Shown: positions 4,863-57,775, counted from the stretch's first letter. The stretch: 64,000 nt of DNA from Entomortierella parvispora E1425 (GCA_020891255.1 BQFW01000014.1:1860001-1924000), one strand, 5' to 3'. The notes: generated by a model not told the origin, from the sequence alone. Program-made: numbers and translations.

Positions 4863-6146
4863 TAGTAGTTGCCGATCTTTTTCTTCTGTTCTTCATTTTC
4901 CTCATTGTAGTCTAGTTTCTTTTTCTTTGAATCAATCATGTACATTATCTCATCAACTCAAATACAGCTGCTGTTTTCAAAACAAACAAACAAAAAAAAA
5001 AAAACAATCCAGTCTCTTGTATGACCGTTGTTGAAACGGCACCAACTCTTTGGAAATGAGCGATCTTCAATTTTGTGTCACCCGAACGCGTTTCCCTCTC
5101 TTACATATAAAATCAGTCTGGAACGGGGATCCAGGGGGTGTCTCCTTTTGAAAAGAAACTGTCGAGACAATTTCAAGATTCATTCAGGAGTAGATCGATA
5201 GAGAGAACATGTTCATTTACAAAAGAACAAATGGGAATGATCCAAGAGATGTTGGATCGATAGTGTGACCACCCATTAGGCAGCGTCTGGACCGTCTCTT
5301 TGAGCTAGAGAAGGAACTGAAGGAAGCAAAAACTCGCCAGGGAGATGATGGGCATGGGGATACTTGCAATGAGCATGTATGGGACATGAAAGAAATTTGG
5401 CTGAGGTCCGTCCTAGCGACGCGTCCCTGCCTCCAGGGCAGCCAATGAATAAGCTTATTGTCAACGGGCGGGTGCACGGTTGTCCCATTTGTGCATGCAC
5501 CGAGGAAAATGACTTGTGCAACCTAGATGGATTGGCAGGGGTTTCTATTCCTCCATTCTTTCACTCCTGTTCAATGTTCACACACTCTCCAGCCGAGACG
5601 ACCATCCAATCGATCTATGAAGGATACTCTGTGGGTTTTTGAAAGCAGCCGAGAAAGGAAACACGAAAGCTCGGTGCGACATTGGCCAGATGTATCACAA
5701 GGCTAGTGACCGCCAAGGATACGCAAGGGCACAATGCTTTATAGGTGTATTATACCACAATGGAGTGTGTTCCTCAGGATTACCATAAATCTATGGAATG
5801 GAACACGAAGGCAGATAAATGTTGGCCAGCGCCCAGCACAACATATGCATGACGTATTTGGCTTGATGTACCAGGATGACAAGGGGTGGACACCAGAAAG
5901 TTATGTTATAGTATCCGAAGACTGCCGATCTGCAGTTGCCTAGTTCAACATAGGGGGGGCCCCAGGCAGTCGAGTGGCATCGGAGAGCACTCAAAAATTA
6001 TCCCCGTTGACCGCGCAATAATTTTTACGGTGACGTAATAATAGCGCTGGATGTGTGGGCGCAGTACAGGTATACGAATGCTTCGCATGCGTGTGTTTCG
6101 ACTTCTCTTCTTCAAACGCCATACCCAGAACTCATCCTTATACAAC

Positions 6147-8456: not shown

Positions 8457-10627
8457 ATGGCTGTCTCCAAGCGTAAATCCACCAGCATCACTGCCGAGGC
8501 TCCCGCCAAAAAGGTCAAGGCCCCCAAGGGCGAGGCCAAGGCTGCCCCTGCTGCTCCCAAGAAGACCCTCTTTGGCAAGGTTCTTGGTGAGGAGGAGGAG
8601 GCCCAGGACGACGACGAGGACGAGGGAGAGCTCGAGGCTGAGCCTATCCGTGATGACGATGAGCAGAGTAGCATGGATGTCGATACCAATGCCAGCGCAG
8701 ACCAGACCCCCCAGAGACCCAAGATTCGTACGTCTGACCTTATGCTGTATTTTGTCGATCCACAGCTCTGACTTTATGAGTTTTGTGCCTGCATACTAAC
8801 CATATTATACGTGCTATTCCTTCCGATTCCCCTCTTTTCCCAACCTCGCAACAACCCACTTTTGCAACGAAAACAACAACAGCCACCAAGGAGCAGAACG
8901 CACAAAAGAAGGCTCTTCGTGACGAGCGTCGCTCGCACAAGCCCAACGCAGAGTTGATCTACCCAGCAAAGAAGATCTGGGAGAAGCTTCGTCTCAAGGA
9001 GTTGCCCAAGGCCGAGCGTCAGCAGGTCATGAAGGAGATGATGGATTTGATCACAGGAAAGGTTCAGGAGTTGATTTTCAAGCACGACATGTCCCGTATT
9101 ATCCAGTCTTGCCTCAAGCACGGTAACGAGGCGCAGCGCAACGTTATCGCCGGAGAGTTGGTCGGTCATTACTTGACCTTGTCCAAGTCGATGTATGGAC
9201 GTTTCATTGTGGTCAAGATTCTTCACTACTGCCAAAAGTACCGTGAGGCCATCATCAAGGAGTTTTATGGCAAGGTCCGTCAGCTGATCAAGCACAAGGA
9301 GGCGTCAGAGATCATTGAGGATGCATACTCGACCTATGCCAACTCTGCCCAGAAGGCTGCTTTGATCCAGGAGTTTTATGGACCCGAGTTCCGTCTTTTC
9401 AAGGTTGAGGATAAGAAGACCTTGGCCGAGATTCTGGAGCAGAACCCCACAAAGAAGGACAACATCATGAAGCACTTGTTGGAGACTTTGACCGGATGCA
9501 TGGAGAAGGGCACTGTTGGATTCAGCATTGTTCACCGTGGATTGCTCGAGTACTTTGAGCATGCCGATGCCAAGGGTATCCAGGTATGTTTTTGTGTGTT
9601 GATATAGAGGAGGATGTTCTTTTTTATGTAGCCTGGGATGTTGGTTTCTAACAGGAAATATTATAACTTGGGGTCCTATTAGGCAATGTTGGATGTCATG
9701 AAGGAGCAGGCTGTCGAGATTTTGCACACAAAGGAGGGCGCTCAAGTGGCTATGCTCTGCTTGTTGCACGCATCGCCCAAGGATCGTAAGGCCATGTTGA
9801 AGACCATGAAGCCCTTCGTGGTCAAGATCTGCAAGGAGGAATATGGTCATATGGTCATGTTGAGAATGTTTGACGTCGTGGACGATACCGTGTTGATGAG
9901 CAAGGCTATTTTGGCAGAGATTATCAAGGAGATGGAGGACATTGCTAAGGACAAGTTTGGTCGTCGTGTGATCCTGTACTTGCTCGCTGGACGGTCACCA
10001 AAGTACATCTCTCCCCAGAGCATTGATTTGTTGGCCAAGGGCGATATTGTCCGTGCCAACACCAGTAAGAAGGATGCCGCCGTTCGTGCCGCCGAGTTGC
10101 TCGGTTATATCTCCCCTGCCTTGATCTCTTTGATTGCCACCAAGACCCGTCAGTTGACCAGCGAGCCATTGGCTTGCCAGGTTGTTCTCGAGACCATGTT
10201 GCATGCTGCAGGTGACAGGACTCCTGCCATGCAGGCTCTGATTGATTTGGCTGCTGCCAACCCTGCCGAGGCCACCTCAGACGAGCCCCACCCATTGTTG
10301 AAGATGCCCACGGATCGACTTTACAAGACTTTGGTCCAGTCGGATTACAAGGCCCCTCTTGCCGAGCCCAGTTTACACTTTGGCAAGGCGTTGTTGCAAA
10401 AGATTTCGCCCTTCATTGGATTCTACATCAACCACGGATCAAGTGCTTTTATTTTCTTGGCCTTGTTGGAGAACCCCGAGACTGCTGCGGAGACCAAGAA
10501 GTTGTTGACATCCAAGACCCCCGGATCATCAATAACCGTCCAGAAGGAGATGGAGAAGTTGATCAAGGGCAAGGGTGAGAAGGAGCACCAGGCCGTGCGT
10601 CTGATTTTGGAGGTACTCTCCAAGTAG
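8457..10627 (+). CDS. PUF6: Nucleolar Pumilio-repeat protein Puf6/PUM3
   Basis: K/E-rich N-terminus. Puf repeats (FKHDMSRIIQSCLKHG, LSKSMYGRFIVVKILHY, EILHTKEGAQVA) and a CPL-type region (EEYGHMVMLRMFDVVDDTVL...DKFGRRVILYLL). Introns at about 8728-8882 and 9583-9681. Confidence 0.9.
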
Positions 10628-10959
10628 GAAAACAAATCAACATTGGCGCTCTTTTCTGCACGAGCGCACCCTATATCTTATCTCTAGCATAGCATGTACA
10701 AGCATCTTTTCACTCTTTCAACCCATTAAAAACAATTGAACCCAAGCACGCACCCAACCAGTTGACCATTGTCCCCCCCACGAAACGCACGTGCCACAGT
10801 CCTGCGGAATGGATTGAAATTTGAGATGGTCCATTTTTTGTTGTTTTGTTCCTTCTACTTCCCCACCTCTTTCCCAATTGCACAGCAGCCTCTTTCACCA
10901 CTTGTGGATGATAGTGGCCCATAGGACAATTCTCTCCCCTTGCACGACTGCATGTCTTG

Positions 10960-12734
10960 ATGACGCTTTCTCTCTCTTATCTCAGGCCGGCCCTGATCGT
11001 GGTTTCCCTTCTAACAGCCCTGGGATTCATTCAGTTTACCCTCTACAACTTTGGTAATAGAATGTCACCATCAGAGTGGATGGGCCGCCTTTTTGTTGTC
11101 GTTTTTAGTCTTTTAATCACCCTCTTTCTTTTCTCTCGAACTTAGACAATGCAACATACAACCCCAGCATTCCATGGGGCAGACTGGGCAGCGGCGCAAA
11201 GGAAAAGAGACCCAATTTATTGCATCCACCTCCACGACTCCGAACCCCTCTCACGATCGTGACCGCCGCCAGTGAGAACCATCTCTGTGCTTTGGAAGCG
11301 TTCCTGTACGATATCGACCGGGTCTATGCGCAGATGGGATTCGATCGAAAGCAGGCCTTGGCATCCTCACTCGAGTCGAAACAAGGCGACGGCGTCGACG
11401 ACGACGACGGAGCCGGATCGGGATTGGAATCCAAGGCGAGAGGCAGGTCAAGGAGGATGAGAATCAAGAGTTTGAAACGACTGGAAGAAAGAATCCGGAA
11501 CGGACAGAGGTATATCGAGTCCAGTGCCGATTTGGCGTTTCTTCGGCAACACACAAAGTCGGATCGTCACCGCCCCAACCAGGGGAAAGGAAGCGGGAGG
11601 AAGCGCGTGCACTCAAAGGAGGACGGGGCTGAGGCGAGGATCCAAAAACGTCAGGACGAAGAGGAGGACGAGCAGGAGGAGCGCGATGCTGATGACGAAG
11701 ACGAGGATGACGCCGAGGACGAAGGCGCTCTGGACCAGGATGTGGAACTGAATGACGATGATGGTGAGGACGAGGTCTGGCCAAGGCTGATTGTTTACAA
11801 CATGGGCATGGGTATCAAATTACGAAAACTTCGTCGCTTCCAGGCCCTCATCCAGGCCGGTTACATTGACGAGCTCTATGACTTTGACTTTGACAAGCAC
11901 CCAGACTTTTGGCGGCTCGGGACCGCGACCCGTGGACAGTATGGATGGAAGGCCGGGATCCAAGAGGAGGTCAGTCAAAGGATGTTAGCCCAGGACCAAA
12001 ACAAAGTTCAAGCCAAGATCGACCATATGCCTGCTAGCGCAAATGCCAGACTAGGCAAGAGCAAAGTCCTCCCTCTGGATCTCGCCAAAAACAGCAGCTC
12101 GGGTCCAGAAGACCTCTTTTCTTCTTCCAGCCATCCCCAAACCAGAGACGCTCCTCAGGAACAACAGGCATCAAAACAGCACCAACCACAGATCTTGCTG
12201 TGGCTCGATTCTGGGGATCGCATTTCATTGCCCATGTTACGGTGGCTCCCTACGTCCTTCTCACTTCGCCAGTTGGGCGTTTGGTCCCCTCAGTCCCCGG
12301 ACACACTTCATAAATGGACCCATCCAGGCTTGGCAGAATACTTTGATGACTCTCTGGACAAGTTTGAACCGGACGAGACCAACTGCAATGGAGCCGTGAT
12401 CGCCTGGGATCTCAACCACAGGGGCGTCCGTAGCATCAACTACCATCGCGACCAGACATTATCCGGCAACAATCTCTTTCTGGACTGGATCGCTTGCGCA
12501 AAAGACGAGGCGTGTATTGCTCCCCAAGGCTCCTCTCGCTCGAACCATCGGCAGGATCAGGCCGCCTTGACGTATCTGATCAAGAAGCAGTTCAATATCA
12601 CGACGACTCCAGTTCATGAGAGCCAGGACCGTATTTGCTTTGGCTTGCCCGATCAGTTTGGAATGCTTGCGAATCAAGATAAATATTGCAAGGAGAGTAT
12701 TGAAAGAGACCCCAGTCATATCATATCAGATTAA
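10960..12734 (+). CDS. Type II membrane DUF1647-like (glycosyltransferase-like) protein
   Basis: Exon 10960-11053 encodes a hydrophobic anchor (ALIVVSLLTALGFIQFTLY). A phase-1 intron (11054-11145) joins it to ORF 11220-12734. Motifs LIVYNMG, YGWKAGI, LLWLDSGD, NCNG, CIAPQGSSRSNHRQDQAAL resemble DUF1647. Confidence 0.65.
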
Positions 12735-49571: not shown

Positions 49572-51465
49572 ATGACAAACACCGCAGGCGCATTTCAGGA
49601 ATGGACTGAAGATATTGGAAAGGCGCGAGCCAACCTTGGCATTCAGGGAATGAGTGTGGCAGTTGTTCACAAAGGCAGGATCATCTATGCTCAGGGTTTT
49701 GGCAAGAGAAACGATACGGAACCTTTCACCCCAGAGGTACAATTGCCATCCGTTCGAGGATTGACCCCCCTGATCCTCAACTATGTTACTTGTAGAGAAA
49801 GAAAAGTGAAAAGAAGTGAAGAGGAGTGGACTGCCAATGTAACGCTGAAGACTAATAGCTTTGTTTGTCTTCCCATTGTTTAAGACAATCGCCAACATTG
49901 CCTCAATGACCAAGGCCTTCACTGCCGCCGCAGTTGGGGAGGTGATTGAGGAGAGTACAGCAAAGTGGGATTCTCCTGTCAGCGATTATCTTCCCGAGTT
50001 CAAACTCAAGGATCCTCGCCTGAATGCTGAGATCAACTTCATCGACTTGCTCGCTCACCGAACAGTATGTATATTTCATACTCAAAGGCGTGTGTACATT
50101 CACATTCTCATAAACACTAACCCTCTAGCATGGCTCTTCCTGTTGACTCTGCATTGATACTCTAGGGCTACATTGGGCAGGACTTTGAGTGGTACCAACG
50201 GTCCGAGGACTGGATTGAGCTCATCAAGCTGTTGAGATTTGTCAAGCCAACGGTGCCTTTGCGATCAAAATTCATCTACACAAACACCATGTACTGCGTG
50301 GCGGCCGAGGCAGCGGCAAGGATTGCTGGCGTCCCCTTTGAGCAACTTTTACAGGACAAGTTATTTCAACCTATTGGCATGCAGTCGACAGGCATGCTGG
50401 TGACGGACATGGTTAGTCGCCCGAACCACGCACTGCCTTACACAACCAAGTCTTTTGAGGCTCTGCAGCGTGGAGAAACGTGTCCAGTTCCGCTCAAGCA
50501 CTACCCCATCCCGACACCTCCTTCCGGCGAAATGTACTCGAACGTGATTGATCTTGCTAAATGGGCCAATGTGATGCTGCATGGCGGACAATTGAATGGA
50601 GTGCAGGTGCTACACAAAGAAACGGTTGAAAAGGTGACTACTCCTTGGATTACTCAGAAAACTCTTCCACCTCGGGATACAGCCTCGAGTCTTTCAGCAT
50701 ACGGCTTGGGCTGGTTCATTGAGCAGTACAAAGGGCATCACACCGTTCTTCATGGTACGTATAATATTTATTCATTTTTGTTGACGGCGTATCATCTTTA
50801 TCATGAAGTACTGCAGACCAGGTCCTTATGAGTCCTGACCTCTTCCATGTTGTGATATATCCATGCGTATAGGTGGACAGAATCCTGGCTATCGATCCAA
50901 CCTGGTTCTCTTTCCCCACGACGATCTCGCGGTAATTGTTCTCTCCAACACTCTTTTCAATGAGCTAGTCAATGCAATCCCATACTACATTGCCGATCGC
51001 GTTCTCCAACTACCCAAGACAGAGGACTGGCTTTTCGATGTTGCTGTCAAAGAAACAAGGGATCTGTACAGGATATTTGGGGCCGACAATAATCCTGAAA
51101 TTTTGGACAGTCTCTTCCCCCCACGTTTGCAAGATCGGCCCCCGACGCGCCTTCTTGAGGAGTTTGCAGGCGAATACACCCACCCTTACTCCCAAAAGAT
51201 CCATGTACGAGTTGCTCCCGCCACAGGCGCAGTGGACGGCGAATCCGCATTGTCATGCAAGTTTGGCGCTTTTGATCGTACCTTGGAGCACTATCATTAC
51301 AACACCTTTCGCCTCCAGCTGTTGGATGATCTATTAGATGATACGTTTGCTTATCCACTGTTGCTGACCTTTGTTGCAGGTCACAATGGCTTGGTCAGCG
51401 AGTGTCGGGTCCTCATGTTGGGCAGAGAGCAGGTTTATACAAAGATCCTGCCGGATGCTGTTTGA
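49572..51465 (+). CDS. Beta-lactamase-family (class C/PBP-like) serine hydrolase with C-terminal DUF3471-like domain; 4 exons
   Basis: Exons 49572-49736, 49885-50064, 50166-50754 and 50873-51465 are in frame. Motifs SxxK (ASMTK), LLAHRTG, YxN (FIYTN), PSGEMYSN and HGG. Confidence 0.9.
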
Positions 51466-51828
51466 ATAGTCGTATTAAAAGAAGAGACAAACCATGGACC
51501 TTTTTTCCACTCGGCGGATCTAGACATTAACATTGAATTGTGAGCGGTGCCCTCAAGACTGTGGATCTTATTCGGGGTACACTTTGTGCGCTTGCAAAGA
51601 TGGAAAATGTGGAAAGAATTTAGTCGGTCATATGGTTGAAGTCATCTAAAGACGAAACCACGTGACGACACACGAGGTGATCAATAAAACTGATCTCAGA
51701 TGAAAAAAAAAGACCACGAGCACAACTCTGTTTCTTTCCTCCTAGCCCAACGCGCAAACGAAAGACACAGATACACGACAAGGAGCACTCACATACGCAC
51801 TAGAAGCACGCACTACTACATACACAGC

Positions 51829-54800
51829 ATGGAGAGTGGAGAAGAGTCGTCGATCGTTGATCTGGACCCTTTGAACTCAGTCAGCCAGACAGGTTCATTA
51901 TTGAACTCTGGGGATACGCAGATGGAGTTCCTTGAAGAGGTATTGCCAATACTTGACTTAAAGTCAGTCCTGGCCATGAAATGGCAAAGCTGATTTCGCA
52001 ATGCTGATTGTACATTTCGCTGCTCCATTAGATTGCACTCTCATTCGTTACGGACGCGCTTTTTTTGGAGAAAGCCAACGCGCTCCTTTTGAACGAACAG
52101 CAGCAGAGTGAAACTCTACAGAGTCGAGCGGAGAGTATTGTTCGGGATGGCGGGGCCAGCTTTCCATTAAACGACAACGTCGACAAAACCCTCTACATCC
52201 TCCAACGGCAGTTTGGCCTCGTTGTTGACGAAACCAGCGACACTCTCTCCGCGTACATCGCCGCACTGATGAACAAAACCGTTCATGCAACCTTCCAGCT
52301 GATTGCACCCGAGTCTAATATCGACATTCCACCATCAAACCTGCTTTTACGCGTCATCGCCCAACAGCTTGGTTTGACCATCATAGTGCTGTCAACGAGG
52401 TCAATGGCATTACAATATGGAAACGATCTCTCTTCGACCATCGTTCTGCTGGAGGCTGTGGATGCTTTCAAAAGCGTGCGAACCTACACCCCTCTATCAT
52501 GCGCGTCGTGTACACCTGTCTATACTGCCACACCCTCTCCTACCGCGGAATTATCTTTGAATCCTATCGCCAAGTTCCGGGATCATAAAAGGGCTCGACA
52601 TACCAAAGACAAGGGCATTGTCAATGTTGTGGTTGGAAAGAAATGCATCAGAGAAAGATGGTACGTTGAATTGATATTGAGACACTGCTCTGAGCCCCCA
52701 GCACATCTTACTAATCCGCCAATTGTAACAACCCTAGCGAGATCGTACTCCGAGGACTTGTGAAGGCCGCTGCACAGACAGCCTTCGACACGGCCATGAA
52801 AGGCAAGATTGCGTGCCCGCCCGACCTGTCTTTGTTGATGGAGCAGAAGTTTCCAGCCTTAGAGAAGAGGGAACTGGGGCGCAATCGGGTTCCGCCACAC
52901 ATTGTTCAGGAAGCTGTGCGGGATATGGAGCTTAAGACTGGCCAGCCCGTGGGATCTGTTACGACTCAAGCCTTTAAAGCCAGACTCTGCGAAGAGAACT
53001 CTGACTTTTCATCGATAAAAGTATATTTGGAAACTGCCGAAGAGAAACTTCGACAGATTTGGGACGGTTATGTGCTGGAACACCAACACAATGGCACTCA
53101 GGCATCCGTTGTAGCCCCAGCAAGCACCTCATCGTCCCCCTCATCAGGCAGCATTCAGAACTCTGAACCATCAAAGGAGGGAGCCGACGAGGAGCAAGAG
53201 CTGCGCATGTGCGATGCATCCCTTGGAAATATCCTCCGGCCAGGAATGTACAAAGAAGCTGAGAGGATACTTACGGACAAGCAGACAAGAGTCTCCAACT
53301 ATGTCGACGAAGTGCAAGTTGCACTCCGGAAAGCGGCAATAGTGGTAAGAGACTGGCGGCTTGCTCTATTATCTCGTCATGTTACTTATTGGTTTATTTC
53401 TTTGCTTGACCAAACTATAGACATGTCAGGGACTTTTGCATACGCAGTCGGAAAACGTCGATTTGAAGTCGTTCCTTCCGAAAGATTTTAAAATAAGGGA
53501 TCTTTCTCTCGAGAAGAACCCGGTCATATTGATAGGAATTGTCTCCAGCACTTTTATGACAAAGTTTGTGAAGACAAAAGACCACGACAGCGATATCGAC
53601 TCCGACCTCCTCAACCTCTTTGATCAGGCAACCATCCAACATCTTTCTTCGAGACTTATTTCAACAGCCTCGGCTTCCGAGCCCCCGCCCAAAAAGCAAA
53701 AGCTGGACAGTGGGGATAATGCTCCTGCTGATGATGAAGATGACGAGGAGGAAGATAACCAGGAAGATGATGATGACAATACTGAGGTCAAGGATGTCGG
53801 TGGTGCAAAGACCAGTAAGGGAAGGGTCCATCCAGCTTGGGACACATTGGCGTCTATTGTACAGCAAACCACAACCACCACCATCGACTACACTAAAGCG
53901 CCGCAAGGGATGGGCCAGGTGAAAAACGAGATGATCCGGACCATGGCGACAAATATGAAAAACATTTGGAGCGGGGACATTTATGGTCACGTCAAGAAGG
54001 CAGTCGTTCGATACCTTGTCAGGATCCATCTTCGTCCTTTGAGTGAGAAGTGGTTTAGAGAGTATAAGCAAAAAATGGCCGAAGAAAAGAGAAAGGAAGC
54101 CAAGCGACGAAAGTCGATACCAAGATCCAGACACAAACAGGCGAGAAGGAGGCATCGCAGCCTGCTGAATCAGCTTGACCACACAATCCACAAGTGTGAA
54201 CTGCACTGGTCAGGATCGACACTCTACGTGCGGGATCAGGAGTCTGAAGCTACCGATGTGGAAGTCGAACATCCTTCGCTTTCCGACGGCATGGTCTCTT
54301 TGACCCCAAGCTCCCGTGTCTCTAGAGTCCAGAAGCTGCTCTATTTGATCGGGAACGGACCACTTCCTTTCAACGCCGAATCAGCTGCTGCTCCCACCGA
54401 GGGAGGCCACGATCTCTTGGACGCAGAGGGGATCGACGACCAGGACGATGAGGTTGGCTTTGAGTTAGATGGGATCGACTGCCAGGAGGAAGATGGCAGT
54501 GGGGCAGACGAGTTCTACGACCAGGACGATGAGGATGGCTTCGACGAAGTTGTTGCTGAGTTGGAGGTCAGTGAGACAGTAAACGAGCAACAGGCCAAGC
54601 AAGGTACAGTGATGGTGTGTGGCCACTGTATTTGTACTCGGTGAGTAGAGTATTAACACGTTTATTCATCTCATGATAGCGCGAAAAGCTGAGCCTACAT
54701 CGAAGCACGTGAAGGGGTTGGAAGTAGTCATCTGCAAACTGCTGGACTTGTCAGAAGCGGATCTTCCGACCGTGATCACGGACGATGACTTCCGCGCTTA

Positions 54801-57278
54801 CTTGTTCACGGGCCACAAGTTCCTGCATGACGAGATCAAAGTTGCGGCAGGAATTGTCAACCTGCTTCGCCCATTTGCCCCGAGGAAAGACAAATCTGGC
54901 CATATTCCACGGCACATACTGGCAACGGGACCATTCGTCTACTTGGCAAATCTACTTTTACGAGCAATGGGATTTCAAGATTTCACCAGAGAGATTTCTC
55001 CCATCTCGTCTGCGGGTAGCATCCATGCCATTCCTTTAGGATCGATAGGATTGACACAAGCCCTATGTTGTCCTGACAAGGGACACTTTGACGTCCACAG
55101 CCAGCGAGGAGAGTTGCTTTCCAAACCAGAGCTAGCAGTCGATCATTCCTCTCTGATCTTTGCCGCGTTCTTCAAAATGGAAACAGTAAACTCCATTTGC
55201 AAAGCACATGGACTCGAGTTTGCGAACAGGTAAGCGATGCAGAGGTGGTGAAGAGAGGCATGGTACATACAGAGCATTTTTTTCTAACGCACCTCATTTT
55301 CTATCGAACTTTAAAACGATCGTAGGATGATGTTTGTTGACCACCAGACTGTACGGATCCTGGGGCGTAAAACAAAACTAGGCGCACCTTCGGACTTGAC
55401 GAAAAAGAAAGGAGGCAAAAAGGCTACAAGGAAGAACTGGCAACCATCGGATGCAGACCTCCGACAGTTGAAATTGGAAGAGTCCAAGTTGGACAAGTCT
55501 ACGGCCAAGGAACGAGCGGCAGAGTTGGGAGAAGCGATTAAGGACAGCGAAATTGACATGAAGGGTCTAAATCGCCAAGCAGCAAAACTAGAGCTATCGG
55601 TTAAAAAATACAAATCAGAACTCCAGCAGCTCAAAGGAGACGATCACATGGCCGACGAAAGCGCAGAGGTCGAGGACTGCTTGAACAAGGATCGGCAAGA
55701 GCTCTACGACATACGACGTCAAATTATTCCGCAAAAAGTTGCCCTCAAAAGGTTGCGGCAGAAGAAGTACGACTACGACCGATACAGCAAATCCTCCTTG
55801 TCAGCACCGTCAAAAAAGAAGGACAGGGAGCAACCTGACGCTCCAACTATGACCACCCCAACTTTGAGCCGACCGGGCTGTATGAACAAGACCGAGTCCG
55901 TTGATATCAGCACACTTCTACGCGATATTGACGCCAACAATGCAGATCCAACGGCACGCAAAGTGCAACTTGTACCGGGGGGAACGGACCCAGGGTCCCA
56001 CATACTTTTTAACACCGTCCCAGTCCCAATGGCTTCGCTCATCAAACTTCGGAACAGATTTGAGGTCTTGGCGGATGGAAAGGACCCGGACGATGGACTG
56101 CCGTCACTTGAGAGTATGAAGTTCCCTGATGCGCACCAGACAACCACTCAGCAGCTACGCCACCATGCTGGATTGAATAAGAGGGCAAAGAAACGACGTC
56201 GCTTGATTTCATCCAATAGAGCCGTGTCAGACGCCCATTCTCTGCTGGCCGAACACTCCATTAAAAAAGCGCATTGCATCCAGGACGTTGAGCAAGCCCA
56301 GACAATCCGGAGAGGGACTCGCACGACTCTTCAAGGCTTTGAACAGTCAAAAAAAATGAAGAACAGCCGCCGAAGAGGAGAACTCGAGCTGAAACGCACA
56401 TATGACAGGGCAGCTGCTGAAGAGAGGAAAGCGTTCGGGAAGCAACCTTGCGGTAAGTCGTGCAACTTGCAACTTCAGTCTTTAGTCTTTAGTCTTCAGT
56501 CTTGCTTTTTTTTTTTTTTTGTGAGATACAACGACAAACGACATCGTACTAATTGCAAACTTTTCTGAAAATAGGTGAAGATGCGTTCACGAAAAAGCTA
56601 GAGAAGAACGGACAGTGCACCTCTTGCAATACACACCACCGACCCGAGCTTGTCCCAGATCCACAAGACCCCTCCAAACGTCGCCTAATCCTGAAGCACG
56701 TTACCGATTGTCCGAAGACCAAGCCCAGAGTAATACCCTTATTCTTACACGGCGCCGCTGGTTCTGGCGTAGGCTCCCGTCTGAAGGGTCGCGCTAAAAT
56801 GGGTGGTAGTAAAATCCCTCGGAGGCACATGTGCTCCTCTCCGGTTTGCAAGACCAACGAACATCTTTCTTCACAGACGTGCCCGCTATGCTTTCAGCTG
56901 CTTCGACTTGCAAGAGGGAGACGGTGGCGAAGAGGCATCCACAAGCTGGTCCGGCTACATGGGGCAGTCGAGTGTTTTAATCCAGATTGTGCTGCATTCA
57001 GGCGCGGATACACACAGAGAGGAAGAGACACGAACGCATCGATGAACATTGCTTTGGCAGGATTTTCGCTCCTGCTCTCACCAGAACGCCGCCCAATCGC
57101 GCCGTTCGACCCACAGGCCCCCGCTTGGGCGTGCCCAACAACAACAGACACCAGTGCGTCACCACCTGGATACCAAAAACTTTCCCCTCGCATCGAAGCA
57201 GATGCCGAAGCGGACGCGGATATCTGTCCGAGTTATGTAAGTACTCTAAGATCAAATTGCTTTCTGGCCCTATTATAA
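51829..57278 (+). mobile_element. Giant Fanzor (eukaryotic TnpB-like RNA-guided nuclease) gene, 7 exons, ~1,636 aa, reading frame intact
   Basis: Exons 51829-51939, 52032-52660, 52738-53344, 53421-54603, 54680-55229, 55326-56452 and 56575-57278 total 4,911 nt; all six GT-AG introns are phase-consistent. RuvC-I GTDPG (D at 55987), RuvC-II GAAGSGVG...TNEHLSSQTC (E at 56859), Zn finger CPLC...CFNPDC, RuvC-III RDTNASMNI (D at 57027). Confidence 0.82.
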
Positions 57279-57289
57279 TTGTTAGCCCG

Positions 57290-57470
57290 AGTTCAAATCG
57301 ACCCACTTACTTTGTTTACGCTTCCGTTTTATGCTGACAGACACTGTAAGAGCCAGAAACAGTTCCACAGGGTCGAGATGATTTGTATCTCTTCGCGTCC
57401 CACACATTCGCAAGAGAGGAGTCAGGGAGGGAAGAAAAGGAGCCAGGAGGGCGGGCACCCTTTTGGACAA
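57290..57470 (+). ncRNA. Candidate Fanzor omega-RNA scaffold (three consecutive stem-loops just after the stop codon)
   Basis: Stems found by hand: 57294-57304/57370-57385 enclosing 57306-57317/57339-57350; 57388-57397/57409-57417; 57443-57451/57458-57466. The position matches known Fanzor/TnpB omega-RNA loci. Confidence 0.45.
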
Positions 57471-57775
57471 AATGGTCAACTATCGGAGGATTCTTCCCCT
57501 TGAAACACTTTTTCATGTCACCTCATCCATCCAAACCCAGACGGAACCTCAGAAGCCGTCGGATGTTGAAAGCCTCCAAGGATCGACAACTGAAGAACAT
57601 GCAGTCTGCCCAACCCCCTTGTTGATAATCTTGTACCACCAACCGACCCAAGGGATCCAACGTCCACTTTGCTCTGTCTTTCTCTGTTTTGTTTTGTTGA
57701 TGTCTCTGTTTTGTTCTCTTGGTGAAAAACGATAATGTACATGTACATTGGGTAAAATATAGAGTGAGCACACGT

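Follow-up and report, generated by a model that had tools for sequence, protein, structure and literature searches.

Organization of the locus

We analysed a window of 64,000 nucleotides (nt) from Entomortierella parvispora E1425 (GCA_020891255.1, BQFW01000014.1:1860001-1924000), and all positions are counted from the first letter of this whole stretch. On the + strand, at 51829-57278, the window carries a gene of seven exons joined via six GT-AG introns, the predicted product of which ends in a nuclease core of the Fanzor1 type. Fanzors are eukaryotic RNA-guided nucleases, and we think it very likely that the locus holds one intact, spliced 'giant' gene of the Fanzor1 family, encoding about 1,620-1,636 amino acids (aa) and lodged in a probably mobile unit of ~5.7 kb. 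The spliced coding sequence comprises 4,911 nt, that is 1,636 codons and a stop, with no internal stop.

This gene had been proposed in an initial annotation, made from the sequence alone, in which a first exon and several separate open reading frames (ORFs) were linked by six GT-AG introns of phases 0, 2, 0, 1, 2 and 1. All the ORFs named there appear on the + strand in an ORF listing of the window, and when GT-AG introns compatible in frame were enumerated from one open stretch to the next, the same introns and phases were returned. Translation of the spliced model reproduced the stop-free frame, and the protein motifs that had been quoted were all recovered in the order proposed: GTDPG (residues 1246-1250), GAAGSGVGSRLKG (1462-1474), TNEH (1496-1499), CPLC (1505-1508), CFNPDC (1536-1541) and RDTNA (1553-1557). 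CTRAY branch sites were seen in several of the introns. For intron 4, an alternative at 54567-54648 (phase 0; 1,634 aa), which has a stronger donor, is still open, but fits the homologous sequences and their intron position less well.

Acidic stretches of the protein are encoded by low-complexity, GAT/GAG-rich DNA (53729-53790, 54423-54463 and 54504-54544) that draws spurious matches from many contigs. The last two of these form a 41-nt direct repeat, 85% identical, in the acidic linker immediately before the core.

Comparative support for one long spliced gene

An exhaustive phmmer search with exon 7 retrieved 337 relatives, more than 10 of which are predicted proteins of 1,285-1,823 aa with the domain at their C-terminus. 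Residues 37-1609 of the window model are collinear with an annotated protein of E. parvispora, P0152, at 39% identity (E=0), with every exon in its own frame and in order, and without gaps across junctions 2, 3 and 5; collinearity extends to P0021 at 26% identity (residues 98-1578). Intron positions are shared as well. Indeed, when P0152 was mapped onto the DNA of its own locus, introns 1-4 fell in the same codons as in the window, while introns 3-6 are common to the window gene and the distant P0021 locus (L005). Intron 4 interrupts an identical GCG alanine codon, in phase 1, in the window and in locus L001, and an intron of the same phase occupies the corresponding position in L005. In the L008 paralog this intron is absent, and the N-terminal extension, the acidic linker and the core form a single open frame.

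Three 'core-only' homologs were considered as stand-alone Fanzors. Two of them are artefacts, as P0005 is truncated by the end of its contig and the P0051 locus carries the extension directly upstream, annotated as a separate gene; the third, P0060, was left out. Given the collinearity with P0152 and P0021, the shared introns, the continuous frame of L008 and the artefactual core-only entries, we regard the long ORF as real and, on comparative grounds, as a feature of the whole family.

A Fanzor1-type nuclease core

Searched with phmmer against the sequences of the PDB, exon 7 matched a single chain, that of SpuFz1 (8GKH), with an E-value of 0.016. A profile built from 48 C-termini of the family (A3) matched SpuFz1 (E 5.8e-6), PpFz1 (8e-4), ApmFz2 (0.21) and a chain named 'Transposase' (0.78), and nothing else among PDB sequences. 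A search of NCBIfam gave 0 matches. In the alignment with SpuFz1, the invariant glutamate of the family falls on chain residue 935 and the aspartate of the 'RD' motif on residue 1000; once the 394-residue maltose-binding protein tag is subtracted, these are E541 and D606, reported together with D383 and N385 as metal-coordinating residues of SpuFz1 (PMC10432273). The first aspartate of the family is aligned with D383. Across the family, the three catalytic columns are conserved in 21/21 (Asp), 59/59 (Glu) and 57/58 (Asp) sequences and correspond to D1248, E1498 and D1554 of the window protein, all three of which are retained, as the initial annotation had held. Four cysteines (C1505, C1508, C1536 and C1541), almost invariant in the family alignment, align with the CCCC zinc finger of SpuFz1. 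The canonical RuvC-II position is occupied by 'HGAAGSG', with the glutamate 36 residues downstream; this is in agreement with the earlier choice of the TNEH glutamate as catalytic, since a relocated RuvC-II glutamate is a published trait of Fanzors (PMC10530073). Between RuvC-I and the glycine-rich site lies a family-conserved 'GxCxxCxxHH ... CP' motif (56610-56639 and 56718-56723), which may be a second metal-binding site not described for SpuFz1.

The comparison of folds with SpuFz1, suggested with the initial annotation, was carried out on residues 770-1570 of P0152, the closest complete core (39% identity overall, 39-50% to the window protein), modelled with AlphaFold2 from a 64-sequence alignment (predicted local distance difference test score, pLDDT, 81.3; predicted template-modelling score 0.69). 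In this P0152 model, beta strands stand on either side of a helical and coiled-coil region. Foldseek ranked SpuFz1 (E 8.8e-6), PpFz, a Cas12o and GtFz first among PDB structures, with probabilities of 0.99-1.0 and low template-modelling (TM) scores of 0.24-0.32. With VIA-align, the same model matched 8GKH with a Z-score of 16.0 over 257 residues, and the top seven ranks were taken by Fanzor1 and CasPhi structures; one row aligned model residues 111-760 with SpuFz1 54-633, as an alignment of the whole model rather than of WED and REC separately.

On the strength of the profile-to-PDB match, the fold matches and the aligned catalytic glutamate, aspartate and zinc-binding cysteines, the C-terminal ~790 residues are best described as a Fanzor1 core, as previously proposed. 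They appear closer to Fanzor1 than to Fanzor2 or TnpB, judged by profile E-values and fold ranks rather than by a tree. Spliceosomal introns, of the host type recognised earlier and at positions common across the family, together with PPKKQK and other basic stretches resembling nuclear localization signals (NLS-like), point to adaptation to a eukaryotic host.

In run X3, a 434-nt contig with a word depth of 6,225 matches the codons of the glycine-rich motif (56748-56803) with 6 mismatches, which implies that this sample contains a paralogous Fanzor in great abundance or at a high level of expression.

The N-terminal extension

The core is preceded by a conserved region of ~840 residues without a named family, homologous across all long members at 20-41% identity. 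A word-indexed search found its homologs only in Mortierellaceae (Entomortierella and Gryganskiella), and only in proteins that also bear the Fanzor core. No Pfam family recurs among 18 extension members, none matches the window exons, and a protein-atlas feature search with the extension gave scores below 0.9 throughout. No XPG/FEN1 or PIN domain was matched in the window exons, in the 18 homologs (Pfam) or in the fold searches.

The AlphaFold2 model of the extension, of moderate confidence (pLDDT 67), consists of a well-predicted alpha/beta domain (~36-195) followed by helical modules split by disordered acidic or basic linkers. Over ~100 residues, the alpha/beta domain aligns weakly but repeatedly with OTU cores (Foldseek E >= 0.05; Z 4.7-5.6), among them Otu2, OTUD1/3, DUBA, A20 and viral OTUs. 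An OTU-like fold is unproven, and at most a degenerate one would be expected from the model. As the extension alignment contains no invariant or nearly invariant column, it has no conserved catalytic cysteine or histidine; with this, the weak resemblance of folds and the lack of any Pfam OTU match among the 18 members, an active OTU deubiquitinase was discarded. The helical part (about 190-700) matches uncharacterized Mucoromycota proteins in AlphaFold DB, with E-values down to 6e-7, so that this module at least, as modelled, would be older than the Mortierellaceae.

A unit with sharp ends

The ~5.7-kb unit around the gene, from 51630 to 57345-57349, has no other cargo. It had gone unnoticed in the initial annotation, is probably mobile and has host genes on either side. 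Upstream, a host beta-lactamase (serine hydrolase) gene with a DUF3471 C-terminal domain (50232-51465) ends 165 nt before the unit. The left-end motif is unique within the window; conservation with locus L004 of E. parvispora begins exactly at 51630, and short left-end-like matches in contigs of other strains begin at 51629. One contig of strain X5 contains the downstream flank and a joint between 51629 and 57346. Apart from the source sample, no run labelled with the same species contained any of the sampled words of the stretch. At the right, most copies share the terminus CACAATAA, which in the window reads CACTGTAA (57342-57349).

Two E. parvispora loci, those of P0152 and P0153, stand in different host-gene neighbourhoods. 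A stretch of exactly 5,477 bp is 98.4% identical between them; it begins 170 nt before the ATG and finishes with the TAA of the last micro-exon as annotated, and the sequences outside it are unrelated. A solo copy of its last ~165 nt lies elsewhere in L002. Exons of these paralogs diverge more slowly than non-exon DNA, one copy has indels, and the 42 codon changes divide into 19 synonymous and 23 nonsynonymous ones. This recent duplication with sharp ends indicates that the family is mobile now or was so recently, and the unit in the window is most likely a mobile element. No terminal inverted repeats were found around the window gene or at the unit ends of E. parvispora (7/40 matches), no target-site duplication is visible, and the window contains no paralogs or solo ends elsewhere.

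Strain X5 also carries, at the end of a 37.6-kb contig, a diverged (<90% identity) partial copy of the 5' part of the unit (window 51750-52813). Related units thus exist in other strains, though the insertion of the window seems to be absent there.

Immediately before the left end of the L004 unit stands GCACAATAA, the right-end sequence of the other subtype (L004:2795-2812). One unit may therefore have inserted there right after the right end, or a solo end, of another, an arrangement that hints at end-directed targeting. L004 also contains a PF07282-matching gene (10370-11705; 1,074 aa, cut by the end of the locus) 1.7 kb downstream of the unit and, upstream on the opposite strand, a 1,484-aa gene without any Pfam match (1-1250). 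E. parvispora seems to have its Fanzor-type genes in clusters.

A conserved structured element at the 3' end

The end of the coding sequence, where the codons of the disordered C-terminal tail are found, is overlapped by a conserved element made of three hairpins and a 24-nt motif, TAYGTAAGTAYYMTMAGNTCAAAT. This motif occurs once in the window, against a chance expectation of 0, and marks the end of the gene in all close loci of the family, where the proteins are just 30-47% identical. Upstream of it the same three hairpins fold in each lineage, with compensatory changes (CCAG/CUGG versus CCGG/CCGG; GCAUC/GAUGC versus GCACC/GGUGC) and, in the third stem, arms that differ completely between lineages; the same layout can be recognized by eye in distant clades. 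A covariance model built on six tails recovered the L005 tail, which had been kept out of it, where it was expected (E 0.0017) and matched the window element with 102.8 bits. Paired cells amount to 90%, compared with 80% in shuffles and 19-41% when partners were slid, double changes affect 8/16 pairs, and 0/500 shuffles equalled the result of the element. Nothing in Rfam came near threshold for the 3' region, and a scan of metagenomes with the 3' motif returned one contig. By its position and behaviour, the element is a candidate omega-RNA scaffold or right-end structure, by analogy with TnpB-like elements. Hairpins at 57290-57480 were also considered as omega-RNA and ruled out, since conservation ends at 57349.

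The 24-nt motif includes a consensus 5' splice site, and the gene may accordingly have seven introns instead of six. Terminal splicing would swap the last 18 residues for Thr-Leu-stop. The tail of P0152 is annotated with such a 94-nt terminal intron and a 9-nt exon, whose TAA reaches the last base of the unit, and L003, the L002 solo copy and L008 show the same layout of intron and micro-exon.

At the P0021 locus (L005:5602-7158), the annotated 1,823-aa gene takes the conserved GTAAGT of the motif as donor and runs ~285 residues into the DNA past a right-end-like CACTATAA (5677-5684). It is probably an annotation chimera with neighbouring sequence, and illustrates that a gene model can take the 3' motif for a strong donor into the flanking sequence.

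Table 1. Features of the unit and of the gene it carries; positions refer to the 64,000-nt window.
Feature	Position	Strand	Remarks
Left end and 5' leader	51630-51828	+	begins ATATGGTTGAAGTCATCTAAAGAC; CCACGTGA palindrome; GATCA...TGATC hairpin
Exon 1	51829-51939	+	ATG at 51829; residues 1-37; next intron at the codon used in P0152
Intron 1	51940-52031	+	92 nt; donor GTATTG; phase 0
Exon 2	52032-52660	+	N-terminal alpha/beta domain, ~residues 37-205; fold weakly OTU-like
Intron 2	52661-52737	+	77 nt; donor GTACGT; phase 2
Exon 3	52738-53344	+	helical portion of the N-terminal extension; introns 2 and 3 at the codons used in P0152
Intron 3	53345-53420	+	76 nt; donor GTAAGA; phase 0
Exon 4	53421-54603	+	remainder of the N-terminal extension: PPKKQK, basic helix, acidic linkers
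PPKKQK, NLS-like	53685-53702	+	exon 4; recognized by sequence
Intron 4	54604-54679	+	76 nt; donor GTACAG; phase 1; junction of N-terminal extension and Fanzor core
Exon 5	54680-55229	+	start of the Fanzor core: helices, putative WED strands
Intron 5	55230-55325	+	96 nt; donor GTAAGC; phase 2
Exon 6	55326-56452	+	putative WED and coiled-coil REC, RuvC-I
Catalytic Asp D1248 in GTDPG	55987-55989	+	exon 6
Intron 6	56453-56574	+	122 nt; donor GTAAGT; phase 1
Exon 7	56575-57278	+	RuvC/zinc-finger C-terminus and disordered tail; weak PF07282 match
CxxCxxHH motif	56610-56639	+	exon 7
Gly-rich former RuvC-II site	56751-56789	+	exon 7
Alternative Glu E1498	56859-56861	+	exon 7
Zinc-finger Cys	56880-56882, 56889-56891, 56973-56975, 56988-56990	+	exon 7
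RuvC-III Asp D1554	57027-57029	+	exon 7
Conserved structured 3' element	57145-57257	+	three hairpins (57145-57233), then invariant motif TATGTAAGTACTCTAAGATCAAAT (57234-57257)
Possible seventh, terminal intron	57237-57340	+	GTAAGT ... AG; followed by 9-nt micro-exon ACA CTG TAA (57341-57349)
Right terminus	57341-57349	+	ends GACAGACACTGTAA; conservation collapses after it; X5 joint at 57345 with 4-nt ambiguity

Comparison with known systems

The best profile and fold matches are Fanzor1 proteins: SpuFz1 of Spizellomyces punctatus (8GKH), PpFz1 of Parasitella parasitica (9CF0) and GtFz1 (9CER). With these the window gene shares a probable WED-REC-RuvC-zinc-ribbon order, the CCCC finger, the eukaryotic host and a conserved structured region between the 3' end of the ORF and the right end, where omega-RNAs are encoded. 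The differences are mainly of size and architecture. SpuFz1 is a protein of 638 aa (PMC10432273), and 600-700 aa is the length of most Fz1 proteins, the largest peculiarity described being the ~100-aa RuvC insertion of PpFz1 (PMC11423790), a protein of 865 aa or less. The predicted product of about 1,636 aa is thus more than twice the usual size, as first claimed, and roughly 2.5 times as large; unlike described Fz1 proteins, it has the conserved ~840-aa extension, a core of ~790 aa with a long coiled coil and the CxxCxxHH insertion, and six or seven introns in its gene. The 30-nt inverted repeats of Spu-1 elements are lacking here.

Bacterial and archaeal TnpB proteins (IS200/IS605 and IS607, e.g. 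ISDra2 TnpB, and TnpB2 with its rearranged glutamate) have a similar RuvC/zinc-ribbon core. The elements that encode them resemble the unit, which likewise lacks terminal inverted repeats and any evident target-site duplication and has a candidate structured RNA region, overlapping the 3' end of its ORF and reaching as far as the right end. In contrast to TnpB, the unit contains no TnpA-like transposase, the gene has eukaryotic introns and is four times larger, and direct sequence matches are marginal (E 0.2-0.8).

True members of the same family are found among E. parvispora 'hypothetical proteins' (EMPS_06637, EMPS_07617, EMPS_10880 and others) and in other Mortierellaceae. They are collinear from end to end at 30-47% identity, with the same introns, unit layout and 3' motif. 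Relatives in public databases appear only as 'hypothetical proteins'. A published census reports Fz1 as abundant in fungi 'incertae sedis', with a 677-aa Mortierella protein among the entries of its supplement; the literature searched contained no paper on these proteins or their relation to Fanzor, on Fanzors of Mortierellaceae or on a giant architecture. The extension, the structure of the unit and the 3' motif are new features, while the core displays the testable defining features of the Fanzor family.

Alternative readings

Several observations weigh against the interpretation of the locus as an intact giant Fanzor1 gene in a mobile unit. Among Pfam families, the match to PF07282 (Cas12f1-like TNB; E 0.011) reaches 16.3 bits for a cut-off of 26.3 bits, recurring with similar weakness at the equivalent position in three relatives. 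A profile of the whole core was swamped by coiled-coil matches in the PDB, and the C-terminal profile was used instead. Structural alignments to characterized Fanzors show only about 12-17% identity, and the evidence of fold belongs to a homolog with 39% overall identity (~50% across the RuvC C-terminus) rather than to the window protein itself. The N385 of SpuFz1 is without counterpart, the window carrying D-P-G there. Matches in four runs labelled with the same species name were confined to low-complexity sequence or paralogs and lent no support to splicing or expression. The empty-site joint of X5 is one contig whose shorter side measures 24 nt, with the intervening letters unread. Covariation in the 3' element was assessed on 8 sequences, of which two scarcely differ, and the structure itself had guided their alignment; the region shows unremarkable thermodynamic z-scores, and the case for structure is consequently one of covariation. 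Finally, an ordinary terminal intron could account for part of the conservation of the 3' tail.

These points can be set against three other readings of the locus. Were the Fanzor similarity a chance or convergent zinc-ribbon match in an unrelated family, the subthreshold PF07282 match and the low Foldseek TM-scores would be expected; yet the A3 profile lists Fanzors or TnpB-like proteins only, the catalytic and zinc residues all align exactly with an invariant RuvC-I aspartate, and Fanzor1 structures hold the top structural ranks with the Z-score of 16, and this reading, already contradicted, is scarcely credible. Two products in place of one are conceivable at the junction of extension and core because the window has a stop (54642-54644) in frame and an ATG (54673) in or beside intron 4. 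Exons 1-4 would then encode, with intron 4 retained, a protein ending at this stop, a Fanzor of ~800 aa would start at the ATG, and the long models would be mergers made by gene prediction; at one E. parvispora locus the annotation indeed has a 595-aa gene and a 785-aa gene instead of one. The reading is nevertheless quite improbable, given that the L008 DNA passes from extension to core with neither stop nor intron, that a phase-1 intron occupies the equivalent junction in three lineages (splitting the identical alanine codon in two), and that the spacer of 76-91 nt is too short for a terminator and a promoter. Moreover, core homology starts upstream of the annotated start of P0051, the other core-only entry examined, P0005, stops where its contig does, and P0152 has no methionine near the junction. 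Retention of intron 4 may still yield a second, shorter isoform.

A Fanzor-derived gene that is no longer an RNA-guided nuclease, either as a silent or decaying copy or as a domesticated protein to which the large extension gives another role, such as RNA-guided binding or regulation without cutting, is rather unlikely. The L002 paralog has indels and a shortened annotated product, the codon changes between the recent paralogs suggest only mild selection, the window holds a single copy, and for at least one intron-containing Fanzor1, CrFNuc, cleavage could not be shown (PMC10530073). Against such a loss of activity, the window copy extends over 4.9 kb without stop or frameshift, the three catalytic residues and four zinc ligands are retained here and in nearly all relatives, the sharp-ended recent duplication speaks for present or recent mobility of the family, and the 3' structured element is retained too. 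An intact, spliced giant Fanzor1 gene therefore stays the reading that we favour.

Possible function and implications

If expressed, the protein would combine a core of putative WED and coiled-coil REC, split RuvC with relocated glutamate, CCCC zinc-ribbon and an extra CxxCxxHH motif with a permanently fused extension of weakly OTU-like alpha/beta domain, helical modules, NLS-like basic stretches and acidic linkers. By homology to SpuFz1 and PpFz1, it would bind a structured RNA derived from the conserved 3' end, made of the three hairpins, the 24-nt motif and the tail to the right end, with a 3' extension into the flanking DNA serving as guide. Cleavage of matching DNA by the RuvC site, beside a target-adjacent motif, would then help the element to persist or spread.

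How Fanzors persist and move in eukaryotic genomes, and which accessory functions they have acquired, are open questions. The present family is easy to delimit, as a single-gene unit of about 5.5-5.7 kb with sharp ends, no transposase and intact catalytic features. Automatic annotation labels such genes 'hypothetical proteins', divides one gene into two or fuses it with adjacent genes. The large size is unfavourable for use in genome editing, but the ~790-aa core and the candidate RNA can be tested. Because a delimited unit comes here with a large conserved extension and a covarying 3' RNA or DNA element, the giant family allows one to test directly which components a Fanzor requires in addition to its core.

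More speculatively, and with little probability in our estimate, the giant Fanzors of Mortierellaceae could be self-contained mobile elements in which the extension replaces the function of a partner transposase or of the host and the embedded intron couples splicing to the guide RNA. If so, the extension would supply mobilization, homing or the steering of repair pathways, possibly through a ubiquitin-related OTU-like module, and the intron within the omega-RNA/right-end region would tie splicing to whether mRNA or guide RNA is made, or to maturation of the guide.

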